DNA of 64,000 bases from Paramoeba atlantica (Eukaryota > Protista > Discosea). The position numbers and the translations under genes were made by a program. Shown here piece by piece: positions 34,222 through 60,999 of this stretch. The notes beneath the pieces are model-generated. The model had not been told where the DNA came from. It did not search any database and saw nothing but the letters and a program-made list of their open reading frames with translations. Each line of letters starts with the position of its first letter. Within the stretch, counting starts at the first letter, position 1. The stretch lies in NCBI GenBank assembly GCA_977017575.1, contig CDRNVI010000029.1:372001-436000 (forward strand), in the 5' to 3' direction.

Positions 34222-34268
34222 CGAACCTGGACAGTAGGGCCTGTCAAACTATTGCCCAAACCACAGGT

Positions 34269-34435: not shown

Positions 34436-34548
34436 AGCTGCTAGGCAAGCTCAGCACAGCATCACCCCCTTTTCCCCCCTTTGCAATCTAAGTTTAGTAT
34501 CCTCGGGACATGGAATCCCGAGGACCCGGAAAATAAACAACACATTTC

Positions 34549-36215: not shown

Positions 36216-37058
36216 TTATTCCTCGTCTTCGGGACGAGCTTCATCCTCCAAAGTTAAAGTTTGCGCCAAAAGAGAAATAAAACCAGTCTCTTCATCGATA
36301 TCTTGAGTCGTGGCAGTCACAACTAAGGTGTTGGCATGTAACTCTTCAACCGCTGTAATCGGGACGGTCTGCAAATCGCGCTGTAAGGCAGGAACATAAA
36401 TCTTCCAAAAGGACTTCTCATAAGCTGAAGTCTCGACGGAAGCTAGGGCGCCGGCAACGAACTGAGTGATTAGCCGGCGAGTGGGTGGCCGTTTTTGTGT
36501 TCTGGTCGCTGCACGCCAATGAGCGAACAGCTCCTTGTACTTTTTCTTGAACGGCCGATTGACAGCCAAGTCCATTAGCTGAACCAGCGCTGCGCAGCCT
36601 GCACGGACGAAACAAACGTCGATTTCCTGGCGACGAAGAAGGGACAGGGCTACCTCGGTTCGGTGACTTACGTACAAGTCTAGAACCAATAAAGTCTTGC
36701 CGGGTGGATACTTTTTTTTGCAGCATGTTGGCTCCGGCCTCATACTGTATTCTGCGGCATTTTGGCGCGGAGGGTGATACTGGTTCATAGAACCGCAGCC
36801 AAGGCGCACCAAACGGTCCCACTTTTGCTTTTTTTTATATATTTTTCTGACGGTGTTTCGATCAAGGTGATACTTTTGAGCAGCCTGTCGTTCTGTTTTT
36901 CCTGCATCCAGAGAAGCGCAGATCTGTATCGTAAGCTCTACTCGAGACATGCGCTCACGCTCGCTTTCCACATGCTGCTCCGTGAGAAGCTGAGCTGTCG
37001 GAAGGATGTTGGTAATGTTCTCTGGAGCAGTGACAACAACGACAGGGTCTCGAGGCAT
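36216..37058 (-). pseudogene. pogo-like transposase with apparent internal deletion
   Basis: N-terminal HTH (ERQAAQKYHLDRNTVRKI) is followed almost directly by LLVLDLYVSH ... VQLMDLAVNRPFK; second HTH and first catalytic D not seen. Confidence 0.8.
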
Positions 37059-37339
37059 TATAGCACCCCTAACCTGATTGATGAAAAATTATCTGTAAAC
37101 TAGTACGCTACTTATCCTCTCGTGACCCGGAGGTTTCATCACAAAAGAGGATAAGTAGCGTACTAGGATATCTAAGGGGGGGTAGCGGTAATTCTTTTTG
37201 TTCCACACCGTTGCAGACGGAAACTTTCAATCACATTTCATTTCTTACCGTAAACGCTTACCGAGTCCGTTTACGCTGTTTTTTCATTTCGACCATAACA
37301 TTCTTTAACTTACAAATCTTCCCCCCATCTCTCCAAACC

Positions 37340-38284
37340 ATGCGTTGGGCATTCCTTGCAGGAGGCTGTGTCGCAGGCCTCACAACAGGCTTCGTACACT
37401 ACAACCCCTCCTCCCCCTCCTCCCCCTCCACCATCGCCTGGGCCTCCGACCGCTCCTCCTCCCTCTCCCACAGTTTCCACAAATTCCCCGTAACCTCCAT
37501 CACTGAACTCTCCCACGACACCAAACTCCTCTCCTTCGCGCTCCCCCACCCCGACGAGCCCTTCCGTCTCACCTGCTCCCAAACCCTCCAGTGCGGCGTG
37601 ATGGACCCCAACCGCAGCCGACGCATCACCCGGCACTACACCCCCGTAACCCCCAACGGCACCCCCGGACACTTCTCCGTCATGGTGAAGCGCTGCCCCG
37701 AGGGGCTCCTATCCCCCCGGCTCCACGCCCTCCAACCCGGCGACACCATGGAGTGGGCCACCGTCCCCCCGAGCTTCGTCTACAAGCCCGGCATGTTCGC
37801 CCGGGTCTACATGATCGCCGGGGGCGCCGGGATCACCCCGATGCTCCAGATGATCCGCACCGTGCTCGGCAACCCCAGCGACACCACCCCGATGCGCCTG
37901 CTGTTCTGCAACAAGACCGAGCAGGACATTCTGTTGCGCGGGGAGCTGGACAAGTTGGCGAAGGAGCACCCCGGGCGGTTCCAGGTGCACTACGCCCTGG
38001 ACCAGCCCCCCGCGGGGTGGAGCGGGGAGAGCGGGTACGTGACCGCGGAGATGGTACGCAGGACATTGAAGGAGGGTGGGCCGGAGAAAGGGGATCGGAT
38101 GCTGGTGTGCGGCCCGGATGCGATGCTGAACCATGTGGCCGGGAACCCGATGGATGTGATGGGGAAGTGGTCCGGGAAGGTGCAACGGATGCAGCCGTTC
38201 TTTCCTGGGGTAAACAATCTTCCCGAGGTGGAGGGGGTATTGGGCTCCATGGGGTGGGATAAGTCGACCACGCATCGGTTTTAG
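37340..38284 (+). CDS. NADH-cytochrome b5 reductase-like flavoprotein
   Basis: RHYTPV, MIAGGAGITPMLQ, LLFCNKTEQDILL, CGP; N-terminal hydrophobic anchor; ATG 37340. Confidence 0.93.
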   Translation: MRWAFLAGGCVAGLTTGFVHYNPSSPSSPSTIAWASDRSSSLSHSFHKFPVTSITELSHDTKLLSFALPHPDEPFRLTCSQTLQCGVMDPNRSRRITRHYTPVTPNGTPGHFSVMVKRCPEGLLSPRLHALQPGDTMEWATVPPSFVYKPGMFARVYMIAGGAGITPMLQMIRTVLGNPSDTTPMRLLFCNKTEQDILLRGELDKLAKEHPGRFQVHYALDQPPAGWSGESGYVTAEMVRRTLKEGGPEKGDRMLVCGPDAMLNHVAGNPMDVMGKWSGKVQRMQPFFPGVNNLPEVEGVLGSMGWDKSTTHRF

Positions 38285-38806
38285 ATATGGCCATGGGAGT
38301 GAGACAGAAGTTTATGTGAGTTTATGAGTTTGTAAAAAAGGCTTTTGAAAGTTGGTTAAATTTCGTTGTTGAGCAACATGCGCACACATGAACCCTGTAC
38401 ATATTATTGATATTCCCTTTGGAAACTTGTGGGCTACATTTCAATCTTCGATATGCAACACAACAAATTATTTGTACGGTACAAGAAATTCTTTTGCAAA
38501 TTGTAAAACAATAAACACATTCTACAGCAATATGGTTAATTTTCTGTTGAGCACGTTGCATTTTTTTGATCCTCTAAAGCAGATATAATTTTGGGCGCCT
38601 TAACCCCGATCTTTCCTGCCTTCGTAAGTTTTTTTCAATTTTTCTTCGTAAACTGATTTCTTCTTAAGATTCTTCATGAACTTATTTTTGTAATTTTATA
38701 TTGACTGGTGTATCGTTATGGTGTATGACCACATCTCCATGTATTTTTCGGAGTGCAGTATAATCAATTTTGAAGTTTTTTCATTAAGCTTTTGCATACT
38801 TTCAGA

Positions 38807-39163
38807 ATGTCCAGATTTTCGGCAGATTTTTCGAAAAAATGTCGGACCTTTCTCGAAGAAAATGCGACAAAGCGCGAAGATCTTCAGAAATGTCTCGAGG
38901 AGAATGTGAAATACGACGTGAACAAAATGTGCGCCAAGCAAAAAAGCGATTACTTATATGCGATTTCACTGGCGTTCTGTCGTCCTGAATACGAGACCGG
39001 TGTGAAATGCCAGAAGGCGGCCGGGGATGAGTGGGCAGACAAGTGCTTTCAAGACAACGTCCTGGTGGGGCAGTGCCTTGATACAACGCTAAAGAAATTG
39101 TACATGTATGGGGTGCAAACGGACCCCAAGAATCCAAACAATCCTAAGACAGTAAGAAGTTAA
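38807..39163 (+). CDS. Small Cys-rich CX9C mitochondrial intermembrane-space-type protein
   Basis: CRPEYETGVKC and CFQDNVLVGQC (twin CX9C) plus additional Cys; ATG follows CAG-A. Confidence 0.7.
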   Translation: MSRFSADFSKKCRTFLEENATKREDLQKCLEENVKYDVNKMCAKQKSDYLYAISLAFCRPEYETGVKCQKAAGDEWADKCFQDNVLVGQCLDTTLKKLYMYGVQTDPKNPNNPKTVRS

Positions 39164-39531
39164 CCGACGTCAGCTAGGTGCTTGGAGCGAGTTTGATACA
39201 GCTTAGTGATTTTCGAGTGATAACGAAAAGGAATGCACTGCGCACCAGTACGTACAGCCGTGCTTCCTTCAGTGTATTATGACTGAGCTGATCCTGTTGA
39301 TGCAGGTTATGCAGGGTATACCCGCTTGTCAGTGTAGAACGCGCCATTAGTGGGTTATGCCTTGACGGTCTAGTCAAGCAAAGTAACTGTATCTGATGGT
39401 ATCCTTTTAATCACAAGGACTATGTGTACCTCACAACAGAGGGTCTACACTTTCCTTTTTTCATCCACTATTTTCTCACCCTTTTCGCACCCTTTTTCTC
39501 CCTCAATACCCCGTTTTTTTCTCCCCCTCCC

Positions 39532-40176
39532 ATGCCCCGGATCCCACTTTCCTGGTTCCCCCCCTCCCCCCTCCCTGGTTGGTTCTCTGACCTCGCCCTG
39601 GAGCTTCGTCTCCCCGCCCTCGCCGCCCTCTACCACTGCTACCGCACCACCGCGCACTACTTTGACGCCTGCCGGTACTTTGAGGAGCGCCGCGGGTGGG
39701 CCTCCACCCGTGGCACCCTGCTCCAGCTCGAGCGTCACACCTACCGCCACCACTACCTCCCGCGGTACAGCGTGGTCTATGAATTTACAGTCAACGGGGA
39801 GCGCTACGAAGGCAGGAGATCCGCGACCGGGAGTCTGTACCCCGGGTGGGTGCTGGAGTGGCTCCCGACCGGCACCGATGTGATCACGGAGGTACAGTAC
39901 CTCCAGGCCACCCCCCCGATGCGCGTGGGGAGCCCATGTACGGTTTTCTATCACAAAAAGAATCCCAGGCTGTGTGGGATTGCCCATGATGCGTGCTCGT
40001 TTGAGTGTAGTGTGCTAGGGAGCGTAAGTGTGCTGGTACTGATCTGGGCGACCCTGTTGAAGCGTCAGGTGCGGACGGGGTGGCGAGGGCTGTTTCCGAG
40101 AACGTACAAGGTGAGGTTGCCGCGGACGATGCAGACAGGGGGAGCGGGTTCGAATGGAAAGCAGCTGGATTCGTAG
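39532..40176 (+). CDS. DUF3592-like membrane protein
   Basis: TM, WASTRGTL..., VVYEFTVNGERYEG, CTVFYHKKNP, second TM. Confidence 0.65.
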   Translation: MPRIPLSWFPPSPLPGWFSDLALELRLPALAALYHCYRTTAHYFDACRYFEERRGWASTRGTLLQLERHTYRHHYLPRYSVVYEFTVNGERYEGRRSATGSLYPGWVLEWLPTGTDVITEVQYLQATPPMRVGSPCTVFYHKKNPRLCGIAHDACSFECSVLGSVSVLVLIWATLLKRQVRTGWRGLFPRTYKVRLPRTMQTGGAGSNGKQLDS

Positions 40177-40773
40177 CGGAGGGAGAGGGATACGGTGGTG
40201 CGTAGTTTATGCGACATGGCTGGCCTTGTATGGCTGTTGATCTTCTGTGCATGCCATAAGCCGTATTTCATGGTAACTCACCAGATGAAGCGGGACTGCA
40301 AAGAATGTCGTAGTCCTGTCACTCGCTCGCTTGTCGTATTGGGTGACCTCCTCGATTGATGCTCTGTCACCTAATGGCTCGAAGCATAGTTAGTCAGTGA
40401 AAGTTGTATTTATCAAATAATTACTCGCTAAAGTTCTATTTCTCGCCGTATTGATTCAAAACATCTTCTGCTTGGGTAGAGCTGATAGTCAATGAAGAGG
40501 GATTCTTTTTCACTGTTTCGCCCACTTTTTTGAGGATATGAGAAGGTATCCACATAATTTGTTGGGGATATAAAAGACAAAATGAAGTGTGATAAAAGGA
40601 AAATACTAAGTATATTGGTGTGAACCCCCTCCCGCTGTGTATAAGGGTGACGGTGTCCATAATGTTCGTTTGAATTCAGAAAAATGAAAATCAAAAAGCT
40701 CTTCTTTGTAAAACTCGATCTCTGAAAGCAGTATTGATTTTTGAATGATCAGCACGCTTAACTCATAAATCGA

Positions 40774-41856
40774 ATGCAACGACATGCAGTAAGGATCGCT
40801 GAGAAGGTATGGGACAAGAAGAATAAAGAACGCGTACAAGATGAGTTAAAAACTGCATGTAGCGCACTAGAGAAGCTTGCTTTAGCTCCATGCCGAGAAA
40901 AGGCCACTTCCCGCAACGTTCTCAGCACCTCATCAGTTCATGATAAAATTGATCAGAATCGGAGAAATGAGATGTTTCAACACATAGTGATGGGAATCGG
41001 AGACCTGCATCTGAAGATGATGAGCGGAAGGCAAGCCATGCAGATTCTTCGCGCATGCAAAAAATTTCCTGAATACTCAATGTACTTACGGAGGCATACG
41101 ATGAATCGTGCCTGTTTGTTGGCTGAATCCTTTTCTCCGCGCGAGGCGCTCGAGTTTCTGCGTTTACTAGTTTCAAAACATTGTAAATACGCTCTGGCAA
41201 ACGTTGACGAACAATCACCTACGTCACTTCCTCTGTTTTCTGGTGATTCTTCACTCCGAGCTTCGCTTATTGATAAGATCCTGACGAGTGTGGAAACGCG
41301 CATCAAAGCCCACAATAGTTCTTCACTGAGCCATACACTAGAAACTATAGTATTTTTAGCAGAAGTCTCCGTTGCCATCATTCACACGCTCCGTGCGAGT
41401 CTAGTATCTCGAATAGAATCAGTTTGTAGACATTTCATATCCATGTCTATGAAAGCCTCCGATAAAGAGTCGTCGAATGGTAAGCCTTCTCAGTTGGAAA
41501 CTAGTCATTTTTGCTTTACCGCATCTCACATATCCCGTTTATTGAAAGTCTTCTGTATTCTTAAATCACACAGTAGCAAAGACCTTTTTATATATTTGTG
41601 TGAAGAAAGTATTGTTCGTTGCAGTGAACTACAAGGTCATCACATTGCGGATATTTTAGAATCCCTTTGTTACTGCAAAATGTGGAGTTGGGAACTTTTC
41701 ACGACCCTGGGCGAAGAAGCTCGACGAAAAGCACACAAAATATCGGCTAGCGATTCAGGACGAATATTGCTTGCCTTTCAGAAAACCCCAATACAGTGGG
41801 AAAGCCTCGCGAGCACTTTATCTATCGGTCCCAATGACCAGAGAGTTTCAACGTAA
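40774..41856 (+). CDS. Hypothetical helical-repeat protein (FASTK/RAP-associated-like, tentative)
   Basis: 360-aa ORF; repeats like HHIADILESLCYCK and SDSGRILLAFQK. Confidence 0.6.
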   Translation: MQRHAVRIAEKVWDKKNKERVQDELKTACSALEKLALAPCREKATSRNVLSTSSVHDKIDQNRRNEMFQHIVMGIGDLHLKMMSGRQAMQILRACKKFPEYSMYLRRHTMNRACLLAESFSPREALEFLRLLVSKHCKYALANVDEQSPTSLPLFSGDSSLRASLIDKILTSVETRIKAHNSSSLSHTLETIVFLAEVSVAIIHTLRASLVSRIESVCRHFISMSMKASDKESSNGKPSQLETSHFCFTASHISRLLKVFCILKSHSSKDLFIYLCEESIVRCSELQGHHIADILESLCYCKMWSWELFTTLGEEARRKAHKISASDSGRILLAFQKTPIQWESLASTLSIGPNDQRVST

Positions 41857-42436
41857 GGTGTGTTGTGCCCTACGACACTATGAACAAACTCGTCGCAAAC
41901 TACGCCTGGTCTACGTATGGTCGACTCTAATGCGGCTTTTGATTGGCGAACAATTTAGAAATACGTAAAACTGGGGCAAAAACATTTCAAGTGCGTGCTC
42001 TTGGAAGAGGAATCTGTAGCTAACGTGAAGGAAATAAATACTCATCTGAGATGCAACAGCCTCTTTCTTATCTTATCAACTCGTTTGTTTTTGTGACCAT
42101 TGTTTTGGTAACGCACGTAAGAATTTATTTCGCGCGTAAAACGTGTGATAAACTGAACCCTGACCGCATTCGTCATGAAAATAGGGTGTTAACATTCTCC
42201 TTTTGTAAAGAATGTGTTTGGTAAGAATATTTTCGGTTAGGTACAAATCTTTTGACGTTTTATTCTCCGTTACCCGGTTTTGACGCTTACTAGGGGAACC
42301 AAGTAAAGATTTATGAAGTAATAAAATGTTTGTACCCAATTTTTGTCTTTATTAAGGAATGGGTCGAAGGTGTAAACATTTTTTATTAGTATTAAATATT
42401 TCTTACTAATAGGTCTTTATTTGGCCAATCTTACTA

Positions 42437-45400
42437 ATGCGACGACTGAGTCTCTATTCTCCTTTTTTACGACAACTTGCACAAAAAGCCAAATATTCAT
42501 CTCCTCCTCTTGAATCTTTATCTGCCCGCACGATACAAGACGTAATTTTACCTGTTGTACACGCTTCTGGTGGGAAGTTATCTGTCGAGAATTTGGAATC
42601 CGCTCTTGAATGGGATGTATGGTACTTGACCACGTGTGGACCACTTCAATCATTCGTAGATAAGCATGGAGCTCAGAAGCTAACAGTTGCTGGAGGGGTA
42701 GTATCAATACGGAGTGAAACAGGTCGAGAAACTACCAGGAGCCAGAAGAATGATAGTCTCGAGAAAACAGATGATTCGCGAAAAGTAGAGCAATCGACTG
42801 TAAGCACGAAATCAGACACTAACACCACTGAGCAAGTGACAGTCGACTTGTCTCCAAAATCGAAACAGCGAAAAGGTAACGCGAAGTTGAAAACTAAAAC
42901 GCATTCCTTGAAAACTCCTAAGACCGTGTTAGCTTCGTGCCCTACTGAGCGGCAAATCCATACTACTAAAGAAGCTTCTTCCACTTTACAAAACCATAAA
43001 ACAGTGGGAAAAGGCGCAAGACAAAAAAAGGCGTGCGGGGGAGATGCGCGAAGTGCGCTGGTTGAGATCTCCGATGGTCGAAAAGAGAATTATAAAAAAG
43101 ATGGAAAACGCCATGTATGCGTAGAACGTGAAAAAGACAAAAAGCTGCCCAGAAAAAGGAAAAGCCGGGTGATAACTGAAGCTGATGCCCCCGTAGAGAG
43201 CGCAAGGTTAGACGCTGATTCAAACGAGAAGTCCGAAACTATCACGCAAGAAATCTCTCAAAATGAGGCTGTGATGCTGAATCCTACAAAAAAGGATGTC
43301 CCGAAAACAAAGGATTCAAGCTTTTGGTCTTGTTACGCACCTCAAGTAGCCGTGAATAGAGGAATATCAATTTACGAGTTTAGCCTACTTGCTAAAAATA
43401 TCCTTAATAAAGATCGCGAGGAGTTGAGTGCTGAGGCAAAAGCTCTACTGAAAGACCTTTCAGAACGTAAGTTTCCGAAGTCAGAAAATGGACTTTCTGC
43501 CATAAACTGTGAATTGCTGTGTTTTTCTTCATTCAGTGGTGATGAAATTTCTGCTAGATCGATGACTTACATCTTCCAAAAACCGGTCGGAAACATTCTC
43601 AAATCAGCATATGAAAATGTCCCGGATAATTCTGAAGGGGTTTCCGTTAGTGAACTGCGAAGAAAGCTGTTGATGAACCGCGTTTGCACAGAAGAATACT
43701 TGGATGAACATCTAAATAATATTTTAGAGGAGAATCCTTTTGTTTTACCACAAAAGCTAATTAACAAAGAAATTCGTGTTTTGCGGGGAATTACCTCGCG
43801 AGGTCACATGCGTCCTGTTTCTCCGGACATAGCCAAAGCAGTGAGATATTTAGAGACATCTTTACGAAACATGTCTTCGCGTGACGTACGTTTCAGTTCA
43901 CTTGCCCATTCGGCGAAATGGAATTCCAGCTTTAAGTGTCCTATTCTTTTGTTTTTGAACTCTCATAGCGGCGTCTTTATTGTAAACAGGAAGGGTTTTG
44001 TTCGACTGAAGACCGAATCTAGCTCTCAAAATCTAAGTAGCGGTGTTTCATCATCAGTACGTAGTAGCAGTTGGGATCTTCCACAACAACAGAATAATGC
44101 TTCAAATGCGAAGCCTACCCCTAAAAATACCGAAACGTTGACAGAATCCTCTGAAGCATTGAAGTCGTCGGATTCCGAGCTGACGAGATCCAAGGATATT
44201 TCTCGGAGCCTTCTTTTCCGGGTGCACTCGGGTAATGGAAATTTCGTTCCGAGTCCAACATTAGTGCGTGCGCTCAGCCCATCTCCCTCGACACTGGATG
44301 CTGTACCACAGCATTCATATGAGTGGGCTATGCGTGTGACCAAGTTTATTACGTTAAAGAAAAATCCTACTTACGGAACGCCATTAGAATGGATTCAATC
44401 TCGCATGTGTATCTTCTTTAGCCAATATGGTTCGAAACTCTCTTTCGATTCGCATCTGTGTGACTCTAGTTACTATCCCGGATTATACACTTCTCTGGAT
44501 GCACTCTATTCAATATCGCGCGTACTAACGATATGTTGCACTATTCATCGACTTTTTCTTCCCGAATCATCTCAAATGAATGGAACTGAAGGAGACATGG
44601 TGAAGTTACATTTTTCGTCGCTACCTATCGTGTATCCTATGATACCAGATACTGATGAAGGCGTTTTGGTGCTAGATATTTGCAAAGTCCTACCAGATTT
44701 TGACTCGAAGTTGTTTATAAAAAGGTATAATAGATATGTGTCAGAGTCTAGCGATGGTACACGTCTAATTCGGGTTTATCGCATGGATGGGTCTGCTCGT
44801 GAATCTGTTCCTTCGGTCAACGCGTATTTTAGAAAGTTGGGTGAAGCATTAGAAACTCAGAAAGTTCACGTCAAAGAACTTCATAAGTATTGTCCATGGA
44901 ATTGTTCGTGGCGTTCAGCACTGGCCCCTCTACTATGTTCCAAAAAGTTCCACGTTCATAACCGTATGATTCGCCTTGGGGAGACAAAAATTCCAGCAGA
45001 ACTTATTGACTATTTAAAGCGCGCCAGCGTAGATCAACCTTTTCGAGCTATACCTAAGTCTGAGGTGAGACGTTTCTTGCGTGCCCGGGGTATGAATTCA
45101 ACTCAGGCAGAAGGGATCTTTCTTTGTCTCCCTCGAATCGCAATATCATGGAACTTTATGGCCCTTTTTCCCGGGGTTTCAGACGGAAAGGATTGTTCCA
45201 GCGAAGTGCTTCTCAAACTTCGTTTTGACCACTCATGTGAGGAAATGAAACAACCAAAACGGGAATCTTCAGATTCGGAAAAGCTTAAACCTGTAGCGAG
45301 CGATACCGCTAGTTCTAAGCTACCGAACGCGCTAGAGACTGAGAAGGAAGATTCTAAGTTTTCTCCCAGCGAAATAAATAATCTTTGGACAGCATTTTCC

Positions 45401-48154
45401 TCTTTGTACGGACGTATACCAGATAAAATGCATGAAAACGTATCGATTGAAAAACTTTGTGGTGAAGTCGAAAACGTGGGACATTCTTCATCTCTTCTCC
45501 TTGCAATGTCATCCTTACCTAAGACAGTTATGCAAGAAACGGTTCTGAGGCTTCTTCGAAAATTTTCCGGCTACGTTGATGTTCAATTACAGGAGCATAA
45601 TGTATGTATTTCACGTAGGCTGGGCGTTCTGCTACAAAGTAGTGGGGATAACTTGACCTTGCAGTGCCTCTCCAAAACTCAGAGAGCGTTATCGGAGGGT
45701 TTGATGCCGTTACCTGTGCTTAAGAAGAAAACAGAATGGGGATCTAATGCGTTAGAGAACTGCGTGCCAATCTCAATATTTTTGAGTTCATTCCCGAACA
45801 TGTTTCGACAATATCCGGACTTGAGCGAAGGAATGCTCTCATTCCATAAGAACAAAGTATCACATTTGGATAGACGGGCCCACAACATCGCAACAAGGGC
45901 CTCACATTCTAGTTGTGGCCCACTGACAGAGTTATTGAAAGTATATGGTAGTGATTCTATAAGGCTTCATTCTCCTGGTGAATGGTGCTTTGATGTGCTC
46001 GGCGTGGCGAGCGGAGCGGAGCGCGTTAAGGCACGTATCTGGAAGCCTTTTTACTCCGTGAATGTTGGTTTAGATTGTCACGTTCCGTTTAATCTACATA
46101 ACAATGATTTTTGGGCTACAGCCAAGACAGTTCCTTGGGATGTGTTGCTAGACAATGTTCCTCCTGGCGATATAGGCATCACTACTGAGCACCTTTACAA
46201 CAAATTACATCCAATATTTTCTGCACTGTCCATTGAAACGCTGCGTGAACAAATTTCTTCTGACGAATCCATCCTGTGCCATGATCCGCATACAGGTAAT
46301 ATTCTTCGCTCTGTAAATGAGAATTCGGAACTTCGCCCCACGGTCCGAGTAACTGATTGTCGCAATCAAATTTCAAAAGCGTTGCAGATGAAACCAAGAG
46401 GCATGTCTGTACATGAAATGAAAAGTACCATATCTGACAAGCGGCTCCTTGGCTCATATTCACTCTTTAATTTTGTTGTGCTAAGTGGGTCAAAATTTTG
46501 TATTGAAAAAGGTGCCATTTGGGACCTCCATCCCAAGGGAAAGAAGAAAGCCAACGATCAGGGGGGAGCGCCCGAACCCCGCACTCAAACCTTTATTGGA
46601 TGGTCGGGTAAATGTCATGTGCACCTTCGCACAGCGCAGAACACTAGCTGGCCGTTGCTGAGATCTTTGTTTTCCCATTCCGAAAAAACTAAAGACGAGA
46701 CAATATCTACAGTAGCTGATGTAAAGGAAATCATATTGAACTTGATACCCCAAGCAACAGGCATGAGTATTCTAGGTCTGGAAATTCGGATTATTCAGCA
46801 ACTGAGTACACCGGCAAACGCGGAGAATAGCTATCAACGACCGTTGCCACCTCTGCGAGATTGTTTGAAGAATATTGCACTCTCTCACAATCTTAGTCGG
46901 GATTCTGTTCGAAAAGCATTCGAAGAGTTAATTGACTCAAAGCGAATACGTACTTGTGTTCTCAGCGAAACTGAATTGTTGGGTTCACCTTTTGTTTGGT
47001 TGTTCCGATCAGATTCTCCGGATAAAGTTTTTCATCGTATTCTCTGTGATGCATATCAACACATTCCAAGAGATAGCAAAGGAATTTCTATAAAAATGTT
47101 GATGTCCCGTCTTCAAGAATCTAGTGCACGCGGAGATGGCGAACCTGGACTCTCATACCAAAATCTTCTTCGTGCGTTGAATTTGCTGAACGGTTATATT
47201 GTTCATTTAGTAGATTACAGCTCAGATAAGAACTCCAATGTTGCAAAGAAGTTTGAAAGTTTATATGCGGTGCGATCCCTTGATGACTCCCTGTTCTTTA
47301 CTAACAGACTCACTGTTCGAGGAACATGTGCCTATTGGATATCATTCATTCAGAACAACATCGATCCATTTTTTCAAACTTCTGTGGAAATTTCTCCAAA
47401 CGGTAGTTTTGTACGCTCGATAGAATCGACATTTAAGCATTGTTCCGAAGCGTGGGAAAGTGAGCCCCTTTCAAAGTGTGTTCCATTCGATATTTTCCTG
47501 TCAATTTCCTCTCCTTGCATAACCTTCTTTCATAAAATCTCTGATTCAGGACAAGGTGCGAAGGCGACGAATGAGTTTGCGTATGTTCCACATCATCTGT
47601 TGGTGTCTACCGTGGAGTTGCATAGAGGAATTTCATTTTTTGCCCTTTGTAAATTATTTCCACATTTGAGCAAGATAAGAAACTTTGAGTCGTACGTAAA
47701 AACCTACTTATCAGATAAAATTCAAGTAATTACGACCTATGGGGGTACACTTTTCCTCATTCCAAAATTCATAGCAAAATTTATTCCTCCCGCAAAAGAA
47801 GGCAATGGCATTGATTGTCAAACACTCAACCCGCAAATAGATTTTTTGCGTCAATTAGCGCAAGTGAAGAGTCTTATTACAGTGAGGTTTAATCAGAGTA
47901 AAATTGATTCAGAACCTGCTTGGAAAAGAAACGCAAGTTCGCCAGAAATCAATTCTTATCTCATGGAGATATTCTACCTTCAACTGGCCCCGCTGCTGAG
48001 AAATGCGCATGTCGTAGAATCCCGTGAATTATTACTTGAAGCATGGAAAAAGTACGAAAATAAATTGGGAAGCCTGCCTACGTTTCTTCTTTCACTTTCG
48101 AGGGGTGAGGCTGCCAAAAACACGGATGAAACAAATGTTATAACCGAGGAATGA
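42437..48154 (+). CDS. Giant 1905-aa protein with presequence-like N-terminus and repeated winged-helix/LOTUS-like motifs
   Basis: Uninterrupted ORF; recurring G(I/M/V)S-x-x-x-L motifs (e.g. GVSVSELRRKL, GMSVHEMKS, GISIKMLMSRL, GISFFALCKLF). Confidence 0.75.
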   Translation: MRRLSLYSPFLRQLAQKAKYSSPPLESLSARTIQDVILPVVHASGGKLSVENLESALEWDVWYLTTCGPLQSFVDKHGAQKLTVAGGVVSIRSETGRETTRSQKNDSLEKTDDSRKVEQSTVSTKSDTNTTEQVTVDLSPKSKQRKGNAKLKTKTHSLKTPKTVLASCPTERQIHTTKEASSTLQNHKTVGKGARQKKACGGDARSALVEISDGRKENYKKDGKRHVCVEREKDKKLPRKRKSRVITEADAPVESARLDADSNEKSETITQEISQNEAVMLNPTKKDVPKTKDSSFWSCYAPQVAVNRGISIYEFSLLAKNILNKDREELSAEAKALLKDLSERKFPKSENGLSAINCELLCFSSFSGDEISARSMTYIFQKPVGNILKSAYENVPDNSEGVSVSELRRKLLMNRVCTEEYLDEHLNNILEENPFVLPQKLINKEIRVLRGITSRGHMRPVSPDIAKAVRYLETSLRNMSSRDVRFSSLAHSAKWNSSFKCPILLFLNSHSGVFIVNRKGFVRLKTESSSQNLSSGVSSSVRSSSWDLPQQQNNASNAKPTPKNTETLTESSEALKSSDSELTRSKDISRSLLFRVHSGNGNFVPSPTLVRALSPSPSTLDAVPQHSYEWAMRVTKFITLKKNPTYGTPLEWIQSRMCIFFSQYGSKLSFDSHLCDSSYYPGLYTSLDALYSISRVLTICCTIHRLFLPESSQMNGTEGDMVKLHFSSLPIVYPMIPDTDEGVLVLDICKVLPDFDSKLFIKRYNRYVSESSDGTRLIRVYRMDGSARESVPSVNAYFRKLGEALETQKVHVKELHKYCPWNCSWRSALAPLLCSKKFHVHNRMIRLGETKIPAELIDYLKRASVDQPFRAIPKSEVRRFLRARGMNSTQAEGIFLCLPRIAISWNFMALFPGVSDGKDCSSEVLLKLRFDHSCEEMKQPKRESSDSEKLKPVASDTASSKLPNALETEKEDSKFSPSEINNLWTAFSSLYGRIPDKMHENVSIEKLCGEVENVGHSSSLLLAMSSLPKTVMQETVLRLLRKFSGYVDVQLQEHNVCISRRLGVLLQSSGDNLTLQCLSKTQRALSEGLMPLPVLKKKTEWGSNALENCVPISIFLSSFPNMFRQYPDLSEGMLSFHKNKVSHLDRRAHNIATRASHSSCGPLTELLKVYGSDSIRLHSPGEWCFDVLGVASGAERVKARIWKPFYSVNVGLDCHVPFNLHNNDFWATAKTVPWDVLLDNVPPGDIGITTEHLYNKLHPIFSALSIETLREQISSDESILCHDPHTGNILRSVNENSELRPTVRVTDCRNQISKALQMKPRGMSVHEMKSTISDKRLLGSYSLFNFVVLSGSKFCIEKGAIWDLHPKGKKKANDQGGAPEPRTQTFIGWSGKCHVHLRTAQNTSWPLLRSLFSHSEKTKDETISTVADVKEIILNLIPQATGMSILGLEIRIIQQLSTPANAENSYQRPLPPLRDCLKNIALSHNLSRDSVRKAFEELIDSKRIRTCVLSETELLGSPFVWLFRSDSPDKVFHRILCDAYQHIPRDSKGISIKMLMSRLQESSARGDGEPGLSYQNLLRALNLLNGYIVHLVDYSSDKNSNVAKKFESLYAVRSLDDSLFFTNRLTVRGTCAYWISFIQNNIDPFFQTSVEISPNGSFVRSIESTFKHCSEAWESEPLSKCVPFDIFLSISSPCITFFHKISDSGQGAKATNEFAYVPHHLLVSTVELHRGISFFALCKLFPHLSKIRNFESYVKTYLSDKIQVITTYGGTLFLIPKFIAKFIPPAKEGNGIDCQTLNPQIDFLRQLAQVKSLITVRFNQSKIDSEPAWKRNASSPEINSYLMEIFYLQLAPLLRNAHVVESRELLLEAWKKYENKLGSLPTFLLSLSRGEAAKNTDETNVITEE

Positions 48155-48751
48155 TTTTCTCCAGAGAAATATGGTCTCGTAAATAGTACAGGATGGGATG
48201 TCGTTTTCTAACCGTTAAAATAATTTTTTTCACCCTATGCATTTGATGTATAGGGCTGGTTTGTGTCTTTTCGATGTATCATAATTTGTCAAACACTATC
48301 TAATCAGAGTATCACAGCACGTTGCCTATTTGTCGCACCTTTTTTGGTGATCTGAGGTAAACAATTGCGTGTACGTAATAAACGGTATTACATGGTAGGT
48401 ACCTGCTATCTAAAACAATTTAATTATCCTTGTCTCTTGTAATTCAGGCTGTTGCGCGTCTAGTGCCATCATGCTAGAAAATAGGGCCGTAGAACTGTAC
48501 ACAGTGTACGGTATGAAGCTAATGCGACCATTACTCTATATTTTATTATAACAGAAAAATAACATACGACTTGATGTCAGAGTTTCACTTATCGCTCGAG
48601 GAGTAGTGCACTAAAGTGAATTCTGAGTTACAACAATAGTTTAATTCAATAAAACAATACAATAAAATTTATTGTGTACACTATCCACAATCGAATTCGT
48701 ACTTAGTATCAACATTACTTCTGCTAGACTTTGCGTAAGCCTAATACATCG

Positions 48752-49648
48752 ATGTCATCGAATAGCAGCGCCGACATGGAAAACGGAGACTTGTGTTCGA
48801 GCCTTTTTCTGTGCACTCTCTGTCGTGAGCTTTTCGACATTCCAATGCTAAACACAGTGTGTGGCCATATTTTTTGTCGTCGTTGCATTTCTCACTGTAT
48901 TGAGAAAGGCATCCCGCATGGTCGCCGAGGTCGCATAACAAGGAATTTATGCCCAACTTGTCATGGACCTGCGTTTCTGTGGCAGATGTGTCGTCTGTAC
49001 GTATTAGAAAATTGTGTCTCGCTCCTTCGTGCATCTAGAAATTCGCATTCCAAACTAATGCCCGACTTCACTGTGGAGAATGACCGAAACGAACAAAGGG
49101 CACCTTCGTACACCAATCAAGAAAGCACTCTGGGACCTGAAAGCGGGTCGTTAATAACATCTCCCTTACCCCTGCCACTAAACAGGGAGGATGAAAACTT
49201 TATATCACGCTCCACAAACTTCAGTCCTTTATTCCCTGCTCCAGCAATGGTGACAGGGTTTCACATTGGCCGCACCCCACGTACGATACATAAGCCGTTT
49301 CCTCTCCGCACTGATTCGCCTCCCACAGAGGCACGTTTGTTACGCGCGGGTGAATACGTGATGAAAAAGAGCTCCCCGGCGAGACGTGATGAAGCAAGGA
49401 GATGTAGTCAAGAAAAAAACCATACATTCGCAAGCCCTTCCTCAGGGAGATACATGTATTTTCCGAAAGATATAGAGGTGGAAAATGGCATCCAAGCACG
49501 CAACACAGGTGCTAAGCGCACGACAATACGCAGTGAGCACATGAGAGAGATCCTAAGTGACATATCAAGGGAACTCAAGAGGCAGAGAGCAATGATTCGT
49601 CGCATGCGACGTGTTTATGAGGAGGCGCGGAGTGCAAGCGACACATGA
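48752..49648 (+). CDS. RING-finger protein
   Basis: CTLC...CGHIFCRRC...CPTC. Confidence 0.85.
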   Translation: MSSNSSADMENGDLCSSLFLCTLCRELFDIPMLNTVCGHIFCRRCISHCIEKGIPHGRRGRITRNLCPTCHGPAFLWQMCRLYVLENCVSLLRASRNSHSKLMPDFTVENDRNEQRAPSYTNQESTLGPESGSLITSPLPLPLNREDENFISRSTNFSPLFPAPAMVTGFHIGRTPRTIHKPFPLRTDSPPTEARLLRAGEYVMKKSSPARRDEARRCSQEKNHTFASPSSGRYMYFPKDIEVENGIQARNTGAKRTTIRSEHMREILSDISRELKRQRAMIRRMRRVYEEARSASDT

Positions 49649-50250
49649 TACTGAGACTGTTTTTCTGAACGACTTTTGTTACACACTTTTTCGTGTGTCT
49701 GCTCACATTCGACATGATCCGGCAAGAACATTTTAAATTATTTCCTGAAATGTGAGATCCAAAAGTAAGTGCTGCACTTTTTTTCAATGACTTACTACAG
49801 TACCATGTTCGTTTTTCTATGGATACACTTTTTAAAGTAACTTTAGACTTGAAGAATAACATGGCCTCTTGCTCTATTTCGCCTGCTCCTCTACTGGAAC
49901 TACGTGTATTATTCATACTCTGAAGGATCTGCCTCCTGGTTGCCCTTCTTCATCTCCCACTGCTTAACAGTCTGTAGTAGTTAAAACGTAGCACAATGGT
50001 ACATACTTTATCCCTTATCGAAGACTTGATGCACCAAAAAGCAACAATTTTTGTTTCTCCTTCTTTAAAAGAAGAAATGTGGTCTGCAAAAGACTTTTGC
50101 AGACCGTTTCATTTTTTTCGAAAAACAACAATAGCCCTTTCCCCTCTTTCACACAAACCCTTCCCCTCACCGTTTCGCCCTACCTACAACCTACCTCTCC
50201 CTAACACCCACCCATGCCCCCCTTTCTCCTCCCCCCCTCCCCCCTCCCCC

Positions 50251-51487
50251 ATGTCTGACCCCCACGACAACCCCCTCCCCCACCCCGGGGACGACCACGA
50301 CGACCACGACGACCCCACCCCCTTCGAGCCCCCCCACGACCTGCTGGGTCAGCGCTCTGACCTCTCTGACCTCTCTGACCCCTCCTGCGACCCCTGCGAC
50401 GCCCTGCTGACCTGCCCCCCGACCCACACCGCCCCCATCCACAGCCTTGCGGTCCACGCGGCCCGCCCCCGCCTCCTGGCGACCGGGGCCGAGGACGACA
50501 GCGTGGTGCTGTGGGACTTAGCCGCGGAGCCCGGGGTCTCCACCACGGTGCTGCGGGCACATACCGATACCGTACTCGCGCTGGGGTTCCAGCCCGCCCC
50601 CGGGGGGGGGACGGCTGCTGGCCTCGGGGGGGATGGACGGGGTGCTGGTGCTGTGGGAGGTAGGCCCCGGGGGGAGGGCGGACGAGGCGGGGGGGGAGGA
50701 GGAGGGGGAGGAGAAAATAGGAGCCCAGGAGATCGCACGACGGTGTGATTTTGATGGGGAGGTGCTGTGGTTGCAGTGGCACTCCAGTGGGAGGTTTGTG
50801 GTAGCGGGGGGGAGTGGGGGTGTGGTGGTGTTGTGGAATGTGGAGACGAAGGGAGCGGTGGTGTTTCGTTGTGCAGCCGCGGTGACGAGTGGGATATGGA
50901 CGGTGAACGAGCGATCGTTGCTGGTGGCGTGTCAGGATTATGCCGTACACAGGTTGGAGCCACGGAGTCCGGAGGAAAAGGAAAGTTTTTGGATTGGGTC
51001 TTACCAGCCGACGGCGTTGTGCGCGACGGAATGCCACCCGGACGCGTTTATAATTGGTGGGGAGGATGGGTCGATAGATGTCGCGTCCCTCACGAAAGGG
51101 AAAATTGTAAACCAGTTGGCTTCTCCTCACGAACAAGCTATCGAATGTATATGTGCACAACAAACCGTTGGATTACTCGGTTGCGTTAGCTGTGATGGTA
51201 TTGTCACGATGTGGAATCTGAACACACTTCAAATACGCTACGTTGTAAGGGAGGAAGATGGTATCTCGCAAGGCATTTGGATGGGCTACAATTTTGCTGC
51301 CGCCACGCTTGCTGGAGATGTCCTTATTTGGGATGGGAGACGGGAATTCGACCCCAAAAGTGCACGACGATTTAATGCCCATGCATCACTGATACAGAAC
51401 CTTGCTTCAGTAACAGAAACACTATTGGCCACCGTGGGAGACGATGCGCAGCTAAAACTATTTGACGTGCAGGAAATTGAATTCTAA
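50251..51487 (+). CDS. WD40 protein, SQT1/AAMP-like; one frameshift in G-run 50602-50610
   Basis: Acidic N-terminus; HTAPIHSLAV..LLATGAEDDSVVLW; HTDTV..LGF then GRLLASGGMDGVLVLW in the adjacent frame; WLQWHSSGRFVVAG. Confidence 0.75.
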
Positions 51488-51801
51488 AGTGATGAGTTCG
51501 AAATCACCTTGAACCGTTATCACTATGCAGTCTGTGTTAGAATGATTCCCATCAGGAAAATAAGTTTTCTCTCCGGCTTACTCATTTTTGTTGGAGTTAT
51601 CTCGTTCCCGTAGGAACCAGCTCTGCCGCAGGTTTCCCTTTTTAATAAGTAAAATACACGTTTTCTAAAAAATCGAAAAATGAAAAAGTGGTTTCTGTAG
51701 TACAGTTATGTATTAGCCGATATTTATGTCCTGTTTGTAGTTCATCCTTCCATATTTTTCTTATTTACACTGGTTGCTTTTGATTTATTTGAAAAGAAAT
51801 C

Positions 51802-51990
51802 ATGGATGATGATACATGTATAGATCGCCACCCTGGACCGAAACGTGACGAGGATCAGCAATACTTGAAACTTGTCTCAGATATTTTCGGTGAAGAGCTC
51901 GTCAAGATGAAAGATAGTATAGAGGAACACAACATAGAGTTGCTTCGCGAAGCGATCTTGTCTACAAGGTCTACGTATGAACGGAATTAG
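51802..51990 (+). CDS. 62-aa protein, possibly Rsa3-like ribosome assembly factor
   Basis: ATG after a long T-rich tract; YLKLVSDIFGEELVKMK...IELLREAI resembles the Rsa3 domain as I recall it. Confidence 0.4.
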   Translation: MDDDTCIDRHPGPKRDEDQQYLKLVSDIFGEELVKMKDSIEEHNIELLREAILSTRSTYERN

Positions 51991-52504
51991 TAATACGATG
52001 GCCAGCACAACGATTGCGAAATTATAATTGAGATTCTTTATAGTGTGACAAATACAGGTAGTCATTAGTCATCCTCTCATCACGCAGAAGTATATTCATT
52101 GTTACGAATAATAGGCTTGCTGAGATGAAGAGTATGAGCAGATACGATATGCAGGTTCTTCTTTGAATAAGAATCAAAATGAGCCATCTTCGCGGACTTG
52201 CGATCAGTGTAGTTCTTATGCGTCTAGTGGATACACCTGTAGAATTCAACAAGTAGGCGGACCACATGCACCCACAGGTCCTGCTATCTACTAGCGTACT
52301 AAATGTCAGTAACTTAAATTTCTACATCCCAGAAACGGGTTGTTCCCAGAAACACTAATTGTAGTTTTACTGTCATTTTGTACCGATCTGAATTTTTGAA
52401 ATATACAGGACATCATTCCTGTACGTCTTTTTAAAAGAAGCATAGAACACCAATTTTAGTACACTCTACATTCCGGGACTCTCTATCCCCATCCCCGCGG
52501 TGCT

Positions 52505-53146
52505 ATGCCAGCCAGCCCCTCCAGTACCTCCCTGGGGCTCCCCAACGAGTCCTACACCCTTGCTGACCTCTACACCTGGCTCTCCCCCAACAGTGCGTGC
52601 TCCTTCCTGTTTCGTGGGCATGACCTCTCCACCCTGGGGCTTAACCTCGCGAGCTCCGAGAGCCTCTGCGGCACCTTCTCCTCCCCCTGGTCCGACACCT
52701 CCCCCCCGGCGGTGCAGCCCGAGTTCCGCATACCCTCGTGTTACCTTATGAACCCCCCGCACCTGCGGTTCCCCATGTTCCAGGGGTTCTCGCTAAAAAC
52801 GCTGTTTTACATTTTCTACAGCATGCCGCGGGACGTGCTGCAGCTCGCGGCGGCCCAGGAGCTCTACAACCGCGGGTGGCGCTACCACAAGCGAAGACGC
52901 CTGTGGGTCGCGGACGGGGCCTGGGCGGAGGGCTCGAAGGGTTCCCCCCCGAGCGCGAAGAGCACGTCCTACCAGGGGTTTATCCCCGAGCGGTGGGAGG
53001 TGGAGGTGTGGGAGAGTGTAGCGGGGGAGCTCGAGGCGTTGGAGGATCACGCCCCGATCGGTTCGCAGGGAGGGAAAGGGGTGAGGGAGGGCTCGTCGAG
53101 AACTTCGCCTTCGGTACGTCATAGCAAAACGCGACCCATGGGGTAG
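52505..53146 (+). CDS. NOT2: CCR4-NOT subunit NOT2
   Basis: GHDLSTLGLNL, FSSPW, PEFRIPSCY, TLFYIFYSMPRDVLQLAAAQELYNRGWRYHK. Confidence 0.9.
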   Translation: MPASPSSTSLGLPNESYTLADLYTWLSPNSACSFLFRGHDLSTLGLNLASSESLCGTFSSPWSDTSPPAVQPEFRIPSCYLMNPPHLRFPMFQGFSLKTLFYIFYSMPRDVLQLAAAQELYNRGWRYHKRRRLWVADGAWAEGSKGSPPSAKSTSYQGFIPERWEVEVWESVAGELEALEDHAPIGSQGGKGVREGSSRTSPSVRHSKTRPMG

Positions 53147-53472
53147 GGTGGGGGAAAGGCGTAAGGGGGTGGAGAATGGGAAATCACAAAGGGAGGGTTA
53201 TTGCGGGTTCTGTAGTGGATGTGTGATCTTAAAATTTTAGTTGTATATCTTCCATCAATATTCTCTTATAGATTGTATAGGCGAAGGGTTTGGCGTACAC
53301 TGATGCTGAGATTAGAAGAACATAATAAGCTTTACGAGTTGATATCTGTACTTCCTTACGCTTATTATTGATAGCAATGGCTTCAGCTCTGTTCCCCGGG
53401 ATTGTGTCCAGCGGCACGGGGCACAGCATATACAAACTCTTTTTAGGACACAAGAAGAGTATCGAACAGAGC

Positions 53473-55764: not shown

Positions 55765-56014
55765 CCCCCCCCAGTAAGAGACCCCCCTGGATATGGCTCG
55801 GGAGTCGCACAGGCGGCGTATAGGGAGTAGGGGGTGGGTGCCCGCATGTCTGGGGCCTTGGGGGTAACCCAAACGAGCATTTTAACACTTTTTCAGAAGA
55901 ACAAGTAGAACCGTTTCTCAAAAAAGGTTGGGAAAACTGGCCAAAAAATCATACCCCCCAGTAAGGGAGTTTCAAATATTTTCACCAAAAACCCATTTCT
56001 CTTACTGGGGGGGG
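55765..56014. mobile_element. 250-bp MITE with TA-type flanks
   Basis: Perfect TIR CCCCCCCCAGTAAGAGA / TCTCTTACTGGGGGGGG, flanked by CGTATA and TATACG; third partial TIR copy at about 55951-55966. Confidence 0.8.
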
Positions 56015-60995: not shown

Positions 60996-60999
60996 CCTC

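Follow-up and report, generated by a model that had tools for sequence, protein, structure and literature searches.

Four gene-anchored GC islands with mirrored C/G skew in a 64-kb window of prokinetoplastid-like DNA: probable traces of a process acting outward from fixed centres

Why should coding DNA turn, within about one kilobase, from strongly C-rich to strongly G-rich and then return to an ordinary composition? This question is raised by four discrete GC islands in the stretch of 64 kb analysed here as a whole (hereafter the window, whose positions are used throughout). The islands are 745-1035 nt long and have a GC content of 60-75% (up to 0.755) against ~42% elsewhere, and across each of the four the skew rises from values of -0.38 to -0.73 to values of +0.36 to +0.63 (Table 1). 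The first-pass annotation had described four such C-to-G islands; a flip scan of the 64 kb fully confirmed them, and the three 60-nt counts given there (33 C/5 G, 40 C/3 G and 33 G/7 C) were exact, the maximum in 60-nt windows outside the islands being 31 C or 30 G. To score a flip, the excess of C over G in the 300 nt on its left was compared with the excess of G over C in the 300 nt on its right, and the lower value was taken. The islands scored 57 (centre 37913), 42 (39844), 89 (50526) and 52 (52857), the remaining C-to-G flips scored at most 29 and the top G-to-C flip 35; the scan of the window revealed no reverse flip comparable to the islands. GC was 0.63-0.72 in the islands versus at most 0.51 at all weak flips, which were themselves balanced (11 C-to-G and 8 G-to-C). 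The four islands thus stand apart as a class of their own and are not the end of a continuous distribution. No more than 100-200 nt past the edge of an island, the skew has returned to between ~0 and ±0.15, and neighbouring islands lie in pairs only 1.9-2.3 kb apart. The analysis rests on these four islands of a single window.

Table 1. Coordinates of the islands and of the genes that carry them.
Feature	Position	Strand	Description
Island 1	37300..38335		C-rich arm 37300-37912, centre ~37913, G-rich arm to ~38335; GC 0.58-0.70; skew -0.66 to +0.36
Island 2	39470..40215		Centre ~39844; arms 374 and 371 nt; GC up to 0.66; skew -0.59 to +0.46
Island 3 (strongest)	50130..51075		Centre ~50526; GC up to 0.755; skew -0.73 to +0.63
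Island 4	52470..53230		Centre ~52857; arms 387 and 373 nt; GC up to 0.695; skew -0.38 to +0.48
NADH-cytochrome b5 reductase gene	37340..38284	+	Pfam FAD_binding_6 and NAD_binding_1; entirely within island 1
Small DUF3592-like gene	39532..40176	+	Weak Pfam DUF3592 match slightly under the curated cut-off; entirely within island 2
WD40-repeat gene	50251..51487	+	WD40 family matches; only the first ~820 nt within island 3
CCR4-NOT subunit 2-like gene (NOT2/3/5 C-terminal domain)	52505..53146	+	Pfam PF04153, E 1.4e-26; entirely within island 4

Assembly chimerism, the objection raised in the first-pass annotation itself, did not hold, since independent contigs cross the island borders evenly. In run X1 one contig spans 49000-51463 with zero differences to the window, and in the independent sample X3 a 5,554-nt contig over 50277-54000 covers most of island 3, the whole of island 4 and their flanks, at the depth of its neighbours and evenly across islands and flanks. 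The window carries a frameshift in the WD40 gene, at a G-run (50602-50610); runs X3 and X4 have one letter less at 50602 and G>C at 50605, by which two open reading frames join in one frame. Between X3 and the window there are 10 site differences and one indel in 49000-50204 and zero differences in 50804-54000, and this one-sided distribution points to a haplotype switch within island 3, as a single case. An explanation by artefact or foreign DNA (a chimeric assembly, miscalled bases on modified DNA, or genes recently acquired from a GC-rich donor) has the sharp change of composition in its favour and nothing else, and we regard its probability as negligible. Besides the bridging contigs, which carry the same sequence at even depth, the invariant residues and reading frames are intact, the closest homologues are prokinetoplastid, the WD40 gene is half island and half ordinary, and a mirror skew is not producible by transfer. 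That the islands lie in ordinary native genes was also borne out: the nearest relatives are prokinetoplastids (those of the CCR4-NOT subunit 2-like gene include CNOT2 of Prokinetoplastina PhF-6) and conserved motifs are intact, as in the alignment of the b5 reductase with its relatives. The idea that the C-rich and G-rich arms belong to a palindrome or a mobile element was rejected, the complementarity being of low complexity only and the proteins aligning end to end with homologues.

The islands are anchored to genes, contrary to the title of the first-pass annotation, which had called them irrespective of genes. The start of each lies 35-121 nt 5' of the ATG in a gene on the + strand (chance ~6e-6), three terminate 39-84 nt 3' of the stop codon, and the flip centres fall 275-573 nt downstream of the ATG, within coding sequence. 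The left edge of island 3 lies immediately 3' of an AG preceded by a T-run, and its right edge within coding sequence. Islands 2-4 are located inside a run of same-strand genes, and only island 1 comes after a transposon cluster; tRNA or known RNA genes that could serve as landmarks were absent from the 64-kb window. The four-fold sites of the b5 reductase, taken per quarter, hold C at 0.75, 0.77, 0.49 and 0.20 and G at 0.02, 0.15, 0.51 and 0.62, and the third positions of the DUF3592-like gene hold C at 0.60 in the left half and G at 0.55 in the right half. The tail of the WD40 gene, beyond island 3, is ordinary (third positions A 0.30, C 0.22, G 0.20, T 0.28). A trait of all genes was rejected as an explanation, as background genes contain at most a trace of the trend (the first 300 nt have 155 C and 133 G, the last 300 nt 125 C and 154 G).

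Analysis of the base composition revealed a gradient in GC together with a mirror image in skew. Pooled four-fold GC is highest in the two 125-nt bins next to the centre, at 0.95 and 0.92, and is 0.74-0.79 at ±375-500 nt; from left to right across an island, the four-fold share of C drops from 0.74 to 0.04 while that of G climbs from 0.00 to 0.75, the 'wrong' base of the outermost bins (0.00 and 0.04) comparing with ~0.20 in background genes. When read along the outward strand, the four-fold sites of the left arms count A 23, T 16, G 196 and C 67, and those of the right arms A 30, T 15, G 165 and C 55. The arms are equal in this reading (chi-square p=0.49; unmirrored p=7.6e-27), in agreement with the strand symmetry claimed in the first-pass annotation, the outward strand being G-rich on both sides. 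Four-fold A and T decrease from 0.28 and 0.32 to 0.05-0.11 in the islands (T to 0.05-0.06), so that all bases shift to one base per arm, transversions included; a weak A>T excess (53 vs 31) is present on the outward strand. In the right arms NNR codons end in G at 0.88 and NNY codons in C at 0.48, and in the left arms NNY codons end in C at 0.90 and NNR codons in G at 0.70, against 0.39 for both in the background. As had been claimed, the pattern runs from the 5' UTR across synonymous and non-synonymous sites: C or G at codon position 2 is up by as much as 0.18, Pro and Gly increase to 12%, and 63 window-specific amino-acid replacements fall at columns conserved among relatives. In the left arm of the b5 reductase, the amino-acid changes specific to the window are mostly A>C (18.8/68) and G>C (9.8/68). 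Of the window's 11 canonical G-quadruplex motifs, nine are in islands, where the left arms carry them on the - strand and the right arms on the + strand. The observed/expected ratio of CpG is 1.0 in the background and 0.70-0.82 in the islands, the same as that of GpC, because C and G are spatially separated there; a CpG effect was therefore rejected.

Taken together, these data support, with a probability that we put at roughly 0.8, the notion that each island is the accumulated trace of some kind of DNA-level drive that acts from the centre outward, is strand-symmetric and is fixed in position. The GC peak at the centre and its outward decay fit a fixed process acting from the centre both ways. 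A process running inward from the edges was rejected, four-fold GC being minimal at the edges and maximal at the centre, with no mirror pattern beyond the left edges. The first-pass annotation had proposed a fixed bidirectional process, and this part stands with the symmetry and the decay; its three processes (replication origin, transcription-initiation or R-loop site, break or gene-conversion hotspot) are all candidates, and the polarity fits origin-type and promoter-type skew alike. The known chemistry of single-strand damage, combined with the observed polarity, argues against a resected double-strand break. The drive would start from a zone within the 5' part of certain genes, a few hundred bases in, and on either side it would push the strand running 5'->3' outward towards G, the partner strand becoming C-rich.

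Our preferred version of this drive, adopted tentatively and from sequence features, involves R-loop or divergent-transcription zones with bypass by C insertion. At the centre, RNA would be made divergently or R-loops would form, with a sense R-loop on the G-rich arm and an antisense one on the mirror arm, and the outward non-template strand might repeatedly become single-stranded over ~400 nt per side. Lost or damaged bases on the exposed strand would then be bypassed via C insertion (the Rev1-type 'C rule'), which would turn any base into G. The resulting G-richness may stabilise RNA:DNA hybrids and G-quadruplexes and make the process self-reinforcing, which would account for all-or-none islands; indeed, a discrete class without intermediates fits a runaway process, and the single sink base per arm is what would be predicted if C were inserted opposite lost bases. 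For single-stranded DNA, C>G changes that depend on REV1 are documented (PMC9329121, PMC3521656), and the polarity is shared with the GT-rich promoters of T. brucei (PMC5579346) and with the asymmetry of human CpG islands (PMC2817419). The concentration of G-quadruplexes in the islands and their placement on the outward strand are further points in favour of the R-loop version. Briggs and colleagues are said to have found in 2018 (as cited in PMC13179062) that R-loops of T. brucei concentrate at gene 5' boundaries, to which all four islands are tied. Several observations argue against the same version. The skew (up to ±0.7) and the GC gain are far above any known promoter case, the flip is at an odd location for a start zone, so deep within coding sequence, and islands are absent from three Perkinsela-type relatives, true divergent strand-switch regions included. 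Mutation pressure alone seldom overrides amino-acid selection. The classical bias of the non-template strand is T>A, of which the weak A>T excess of the outward strand is the reverse. Moreover, the left arm would require putative antisense transcription.

Long-lived recombination hotspots centred on the flips, where double-strand-break repair with GC-biased conversion would lift GC, are a possible alternative to which we give somewhat less credit. A fixation bias is the easiest account of the replacements at conserved columns and of the Pro and Gly content, and gerbil genes are damaged likewise (PMC7403616, PMC6573468). The ±400 nt size and centre-peaked GC resemble conversion tracts, the haplotype switch between X3 and the window falls inside island 3, although this is one case only, and the faint ramps in the closest orthologues of two island genes would suit evolutionarily stable hotspots. 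In GC-biased conversion as it is known, the two strands are affected alike and A>G equals T>C, and the unequal NNR and NNY codons of the right arms do not show this equality. For the skew, a fixed make-up of heteroduplex strands per side and repair that depends on mismatch type could favour G on the donor strand, for example if G·G were mended well and C·C poorly; such a mismatch-efficiency model is nevertheless ad hoc, and glycosylase-type repair of G·T and G·A gives an ambiguous or reversed skew. In addition, 5'->3' resection exposes the inward strand, where single-strand damage predicts the reverse polarity.

Fixed replication initiation sites are an unlikely source of the islands. In that case the outward strand would be the lagging-strand template, transiently single-stranded, and synthesis of the first few hundred bases by less accurate polymerases would give a local skew jump. 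Origins in bacteria and in human show skew jumps of the same order, C-rich then G-rich (PMC2817419), and the mirror-symmetric pattern decaying from the centre, with a leading-strand G excess on both sides, agrees with this. However, the skew does not persist along a replicon, the island pairs are denser than efficient origins, and neither the tie to gene 5' ends nor the GC gain is explained by replication. In T. brucei, the origins mapped by stranded nascent-strand sequencing have + strand G-quadruplexes on their upstream side and - strand ones on their downstream side (PMC13179062), which is opposite to the islands. Still more improbable is selection on the transcript, by which an excess of C in the 5' half and of G in the 3' half would serve mRNA folding, protein binding or a grammar of trans-splicing and polyadenylation, on top of a general GC preference. 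All islands begin at a presumed mRNA 5' end and three cover about the whole mRNA, their RNAs have a very stable predicted folding, and some relatives have a weak gene-polar C-to-G trend at four-fold sites (in L008, 119 C/84 G in the first 360 nt versus 67 C/97 G in the last 360 nt). Against this, folding energies are merely 1.5-3.2 SD under those of within-half shuffles and real inverted repeats are absent, which gives no support to a specific RNA structure; counts of C and G runs are as composition predicts, which gives none to selection for G-runs or quadruplexes themselves; and background genes lack pyrimidine-to-purine polarity and have 5' UTRs that are not C-rich, which excludes a polypyrimidine grammar of trans-splicing. 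There is no reason at the RNA level for exact mirror symmetry of composition, island changes damage the protein, and island 3 stops mid-gene.

The Perkinsela genome paper and its supplements make no mention of skew or GC islands, and our literature searches found no description of the pattern in kinetoplastids. The two-directional DNA process favoured here seems to be undescribed for this group. GC islands and skew switches serve to infer promoters, origins and recombination hotspots, three causes that are confounded in animals. The present signal is unusually strong (four-fold GC of 95%, C or G nearly lost at the edges, exact mirror symmetry), and its location in the coding sequence of a compact, intron-free, polycistronic genome makes the direction of change readable per codon. 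The kinetoplastid lineage is, to our knowledge, thought to be without gene-specific Pol II promoters. A speculative reading, which we would not call probable, is that of an early-branching kinetoplastid with thousands of self-reinforcing, gene-anchored 'skew islands', where divergent transcription or R-loops would make them per-gene promoters similar to CpG islands; as a mutational by-product, the displaced strand would drift to G at every base, the mirror image would be printed into coding sequence and the overlapped proteins would degrade. If the islands are initiation zones, they would provide a map of such sites that can be read from sequence, the first for a kinetoplastid relative, and would bear on the organisation of Pol II transcription or replication in the lineage; if they reflect conversion drive, it would be a strand-asymmetric form, so far undescribed. 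Either way, a non-adaptive force would be overriding protein sequence, and the islands will mislead gene finders, codon-usage measures and selection tests in this genome.

Among known systems, the GC-skewed CpG-island promoters of vertebrates are alike in being GC-rich islands of ~1 kb with a C-rich antisense and a G-rich sense side, skew being negative upstream and positive downstream. Ginno and colleagues are said to have described such promoters as R-loop-forming in 2012. Bidirectional strand asymmetries surround human CpG islands (PMC2817419), with transcription, replication and recombination all candidate causes, as here. In contrast, our islands lie within the coding sequence of a trans-splicing, polycistronic organism and flip well past the ATG and not at a known start site, their skew is several-fold stronger, and CpG retention in a CpG-depleted genome is not seen in the window. 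The directional Pol II promoters of T. brucei and Leishmania, GT-rich, with G-runs and, in T. brucei, depleted of nucleosomes (PMC5579346), belong to the same lineage (Kinetoplastea) and also carry the G-rich strand in the direction of travel. They differ in that T is depleted in our islands, which extend over ~1 kb instead of ~10 kb, are always two-armed, and are located inside a one-strand gene array (islands 2-4) and not at the start of a polycistronic unit.

Origin skew switches, at bacterial oriC and as human skew jumps, have the same change of sign at a point and the same polarity, but the skew of the islands is confined to ±400-600 nt. Runaway GC-biased gene conversion (hotspots of gerbil and sand rat, stable avian and canid hotspots, the 5' GC gradient of grass genes) shares near-saturated synonymous GC, conserved amino acids changed against selection, a kilobase scale and a frequent location at gene 5' ends; no mirror C/G skew has been reported there, whereas A>G and T>C are strongly unequal in each arm here. 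Finally, strand-coordinated mutation clusters with REV1-dependent C>G (PMC3521656, PMC9329121) are alike in that one strand is changed per side and G is the sink on the exposed strand. Those clusters are somatic, one-off, break-adjacent and on the resected side, while the islands are germ-line, fixed and at equilibrium, and their polarity needs exposure of the outward strand and not of the strand spared by resection.

Four stretches of the window form GC-rich islands in which the + strand turns from C-rich (left arm) to G-rich (right arm) at a flip centre. Within the islands, all of which lie in the window (n = 4), GC content is 0.60-0.755 against about 0.40-0.45 around them, and the composition profile shows skew going from strongly negative to strongly positive. 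The three 60-nt base counts reported for them in the first-pass annotation were reproduced exactly, and 60-nt windows off the islands reached a maximum of 31 C or 30 G over the 64 kb. Each flip was scored from two excesses, that of C over the 300 nt to its left and that of G over the 300 nt to its right, the smaller of which was taken. The remaining C-to-G flips of the window scored at most 29, the top G-to-C flip reached 35 with ordinary GC, and weak flips were evenly split (11 vs 8). Given scores so clearly set apart and a balance among weak flips, the four islands constitute a discrete class of constant polarity. Between the Cmc1-like gene and that of ATP synthase gamma, a short intergenic element has runs of C8 and C6 and, some 60 nt further on, G-rich runs; it resembles a C-to-G flip in miniature, and the fold predicted for its RNA does not surpass that of shuffles (z +1.1). 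Another region (GC 0.50-0.62), without skew flip, long ORF or Pfam match, shows that GC can be raised in the window without mirror skew; it may be a transposon remnant.

Islands, their genes and other features of the window (window numbering)
Feature	Position	Strand	Skew, left to right	Flip (score)	Arms, left/right (nt)
Island 1	37300-38335		-0.66 to +0.36	37913 (57)	613/422
NADH-cytochrome b5 reductase gene (island 1)	37340-38284	+
Island 2	39470-40215		-0.59 to +0.46	39844 (42)	374/371
Small DUF3592-like protein gene (island 2)	39532-40176	+
Island 3	50130-51075		-0.73 to +0.63	50526 (89)	396/549
WD40 protein gene (island 3)	50251-51487	+
Island 4	52470-53230		-0.38 to +0.48	52857 (52)	387/373
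CCR4-NOT subunit 2-like protein gene (island 4)	52505-53146	+
Tyrosine-recombinase retroelement	30147-35840
DDE_1 transposase fragment	36216-37058	-
Intergenic element resembling a miniature flip	55765-55880
GC-raised region without skew flip	60800-62400
C-run quadruplex motif in the GC-raised region	62105-62136

From 37 to 60 kb the window carries intron-less ORFs, all on one strand. The nearest named relative of the island-gene products is Prokinetoplastina sp. PhF-6, and these prokinetoplastid affinities place the islands in native genes, as had been proposed. The window's ATP synthase gamma shares 67% identity with its counterpart in Perkinsela sp. CCAP 1560/4 and 64% with the one in PhF-6, which indicates a prokinetoplastid distinct from both. 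In the Perkinsela-type loci L004, L006 and L007 this gene lies in a divergent strand-switch region (around 9100-10000), whereas in the window it belongs to a one-strand array; synteny is thus not conserved. Upstream of island 1 is a transposon cluster that includes the retroelement and the transposase fragment, and island 1 is the first host gene beyond it. No tRNA genes or Rfam families were found in the 64-kb window.

The description of the pattern as irrespective of genes could not be maintained, since all four islands start 35-121 nt upstream of a + strand ATG, a proximity with a chance of about 6e-6 for four random points. Island 3 starts immediately 3' of an AG preceded by a T-run, plausibly a splice-leader acceptor. 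Three of the four islands end 39-84 nt past the stop codon of a short gene; island 3 stops midway through the WD40 gene, the remaining tail of which is ordinary in composition. Background 5' UTRs are T-rich, not C-rich, and background genes show a trace of the C-to-G pattern at most.

Base composition at degenerate codon positions
Class	Left arms	Right arms	Background
Four-fold A	0.05	0.11	0.28
Four-fold C	0.65	0.19	0.19
Four-fold G	0.21	0.63	0.21
Four-fold T	0.08	0.06	0.32
NNY codons with final C	0.90	0.48	0.39
NNR codons with final G	0.70	0.88	0.39

The effect extends to the proteins. Second codon positions in islands shift by up to 0.18, and Pro makes up 12% of residues in left arms and Gly 12% in right arms, compared with 4-5% in the background. 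In the b5 reductase, 63 residues deviate from the one that three or all of the four closest relatives share; the base changes implied in its left arm are chiefly A>C and G>C, with half of all going to C, and the invariant catalytic motifs are retained. These codon and amino-acid shifts point to a force stronger than weak purifying selection that drives all bases to one base per arm, transversions included.

When the four islands were pooled and four-fold sites binned by distance from the flip, GC from left to right was 0.74, 0.81, 0.89 and 0.95 before the flip and 0.92, 0.81, 0.76 and 0.79 after it. The corresponding values were 0.74, 0.69, 0.70, 0.52 and 0.39, 0.15, 0.11, 0.04 for C, and 0.00, 0.11, 0.19, 0.43 and 0.53, 0.66, 0.64, 0.75 for G. 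Intensity therefore peaks at the centre and fades outward, which rules out a process entering from the island edges. The change of polarity is spread over about ±125 nt, which suggests that the process starts at several points across a zone and not at one site. On the outward strand, which reads 5' to 3' away from the flip centre on either side, left arms (G 0.65, C 0.22, A 0.08, T 0.05) and right arms (G 0.62, C 0.21, A 0.11, T 0.06) have equal composition (p=0.49); unmirrored, they differ at p=7.6e-27. The strand symmetry noticed in the first-pass annotation thus holds. Within the islands, C and G runs are in no excess over composition, no true inverted repeats were found, CpG and GpC behave alike, and the RNA folds only 1.5-3.2 SD better than within-half shuffles. 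The islands contain nine of the 11 canonical G-quadruplex motifs present in the window; those of left arms are on the - strand and those of right arms on the + strand, a placement due to base composition.

Contigs from public sequencing runs were aligned to 49000-54000. A 13-kb contig of X1 is identical to the window over 49000-51463; a 5.5-kb contig of the independent sample X3 spans 50277-54000, that is most of island 3, the whole of island 4 and flanks, at a depth (about 60-71) equal to that of the adjoining contig; and X4, a third sample, contributes short contigs that agree with the window to 99% or more. Owing to this agreement and to the even X3 depth over islands and flanks, the sequence is taken as genuine and not as an assembly chimera, and an artefact of any kind is extremely improbable. 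The G-run at 50602-50610, within the WD40 gene, is 9 G long in the window; X3 and X4 are one letter shorter, with G>C at 50605, and with their version the ORFs 49996-50748 and 50633-51487 fall in a single frame. What looks like a frameshift in the window therefore reflects a difference in homopolymer length or an assembly error, not a dead gene. X3 also differs from the window by a repeat length of 12 nt at 50347-50360. Over 49000-50204 it shows 10 differing sites and a 10-nt indel (0.8% divergence) and over 50804-54000 no differing site, which locates a haplotype boundary inside island 3.

Neither islands nor any significant ramp (0/39 genes) were found in three 21-kb loci of Perkinsela-type genomes, the divergent strand-switch regions of which are of plain composition. 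A faint four-fold ramp of the same sense is present in the closest orthologues of the b5 reductase (L001, 58% amino-acid identity, p=0.004) and of NOT2 (L009, 56%, p=0.02) and absent from more distant ones. Thus, the strong islands belong to the lineage of the window. On L001 (1-1579), L009 (1-3102) and L008 (1-10853), loci of environmental relatives, four-fold sites of neighbouring genes tend to be C-rich at the start of each gene and G-rich at its end, and spacers between such genes show G-to-C flips (L001 at 1218, L009 at 997). Six genes of L008, a 10.9-kb contig, when pooled have 119 C and 84 G over their first 360 nt and 67 C and 97 G over their last 360 nt. This trend is a weak per-gene form of the island pattern, and these comparisons suggest that a weak same-sense tendency may be older than the strong islands and may recur at the same genes.

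Whatever the model, the outward strand has been driven to G on both sides of the centre. GC-skewed CpG-island promoters have the same polarity. Single-strand damage at a central break predicts the opposite one, since 5' to 3' resection leaves the inward strand single-stranded. The islands share their polarity with the skew jumps of bacterial and human origins and with the asymmetry flanking human CpG islands (PMC2817419), and also with T. brucei promoters that are GT-rich on the coding strand (PMC5579346). The G-quadruplex arrangement reported for nascent-strand origins of T. brucei is the opposite one (PMC13179062). In REV1-type bypass, C is inserted opposite lost bases of an exposed strand (PMC9329121, PMC3521656), so that any base of that strand drifts to G; this is one known chemistry by which a rise in GC, a skew and one sink base come about together. 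For this, the exposed strand would have to be the outward one, for instance the displaced strand of R-loops from divergent transcription. G-richness would in turn stabilise the hybrids and increase exposure, a feedback that would explain the all-or-none character of the islands.

We tentatively favor this R-loop version (probability roughly 0.35) over a replication origin, in which the exposed outward strand would be the lagging-strand template and which we regard as doubtful. This preference is based on the tie to gene 5' boundaries, on island pairs merely 2 kb apart, on the disappearance of skew right at the island edges and on the fact that R-loops in T. brucei concentrate at the boundaries between genes. 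A conversion hotspot is a serious rival, if somewhat less probable: fixation bias gives the best account of the overridden amino acids, island scale matches that of conversion tracts, and X3 goes from divergence to identity within island 3, but a strand-asymmetric repair bias of a kind undescribed so far would be required. Selection at the RNA level is unlikely, since so exact a mirror symmetry points to a single biochemical process on opposite strands and not to transcript selection.

No description of such islands was found in the literature, genome papers on Perkinsela and free-living prokinetoplastids included. A GC island with a skew switch is a known kind of feature at vertebrate CpG islands and origins; what appears to be new here is its strength, its exact symmetry, its location within coding sequence in an organism with polycistronic transcription and trans-splicing, and the way in which it alters proteins.
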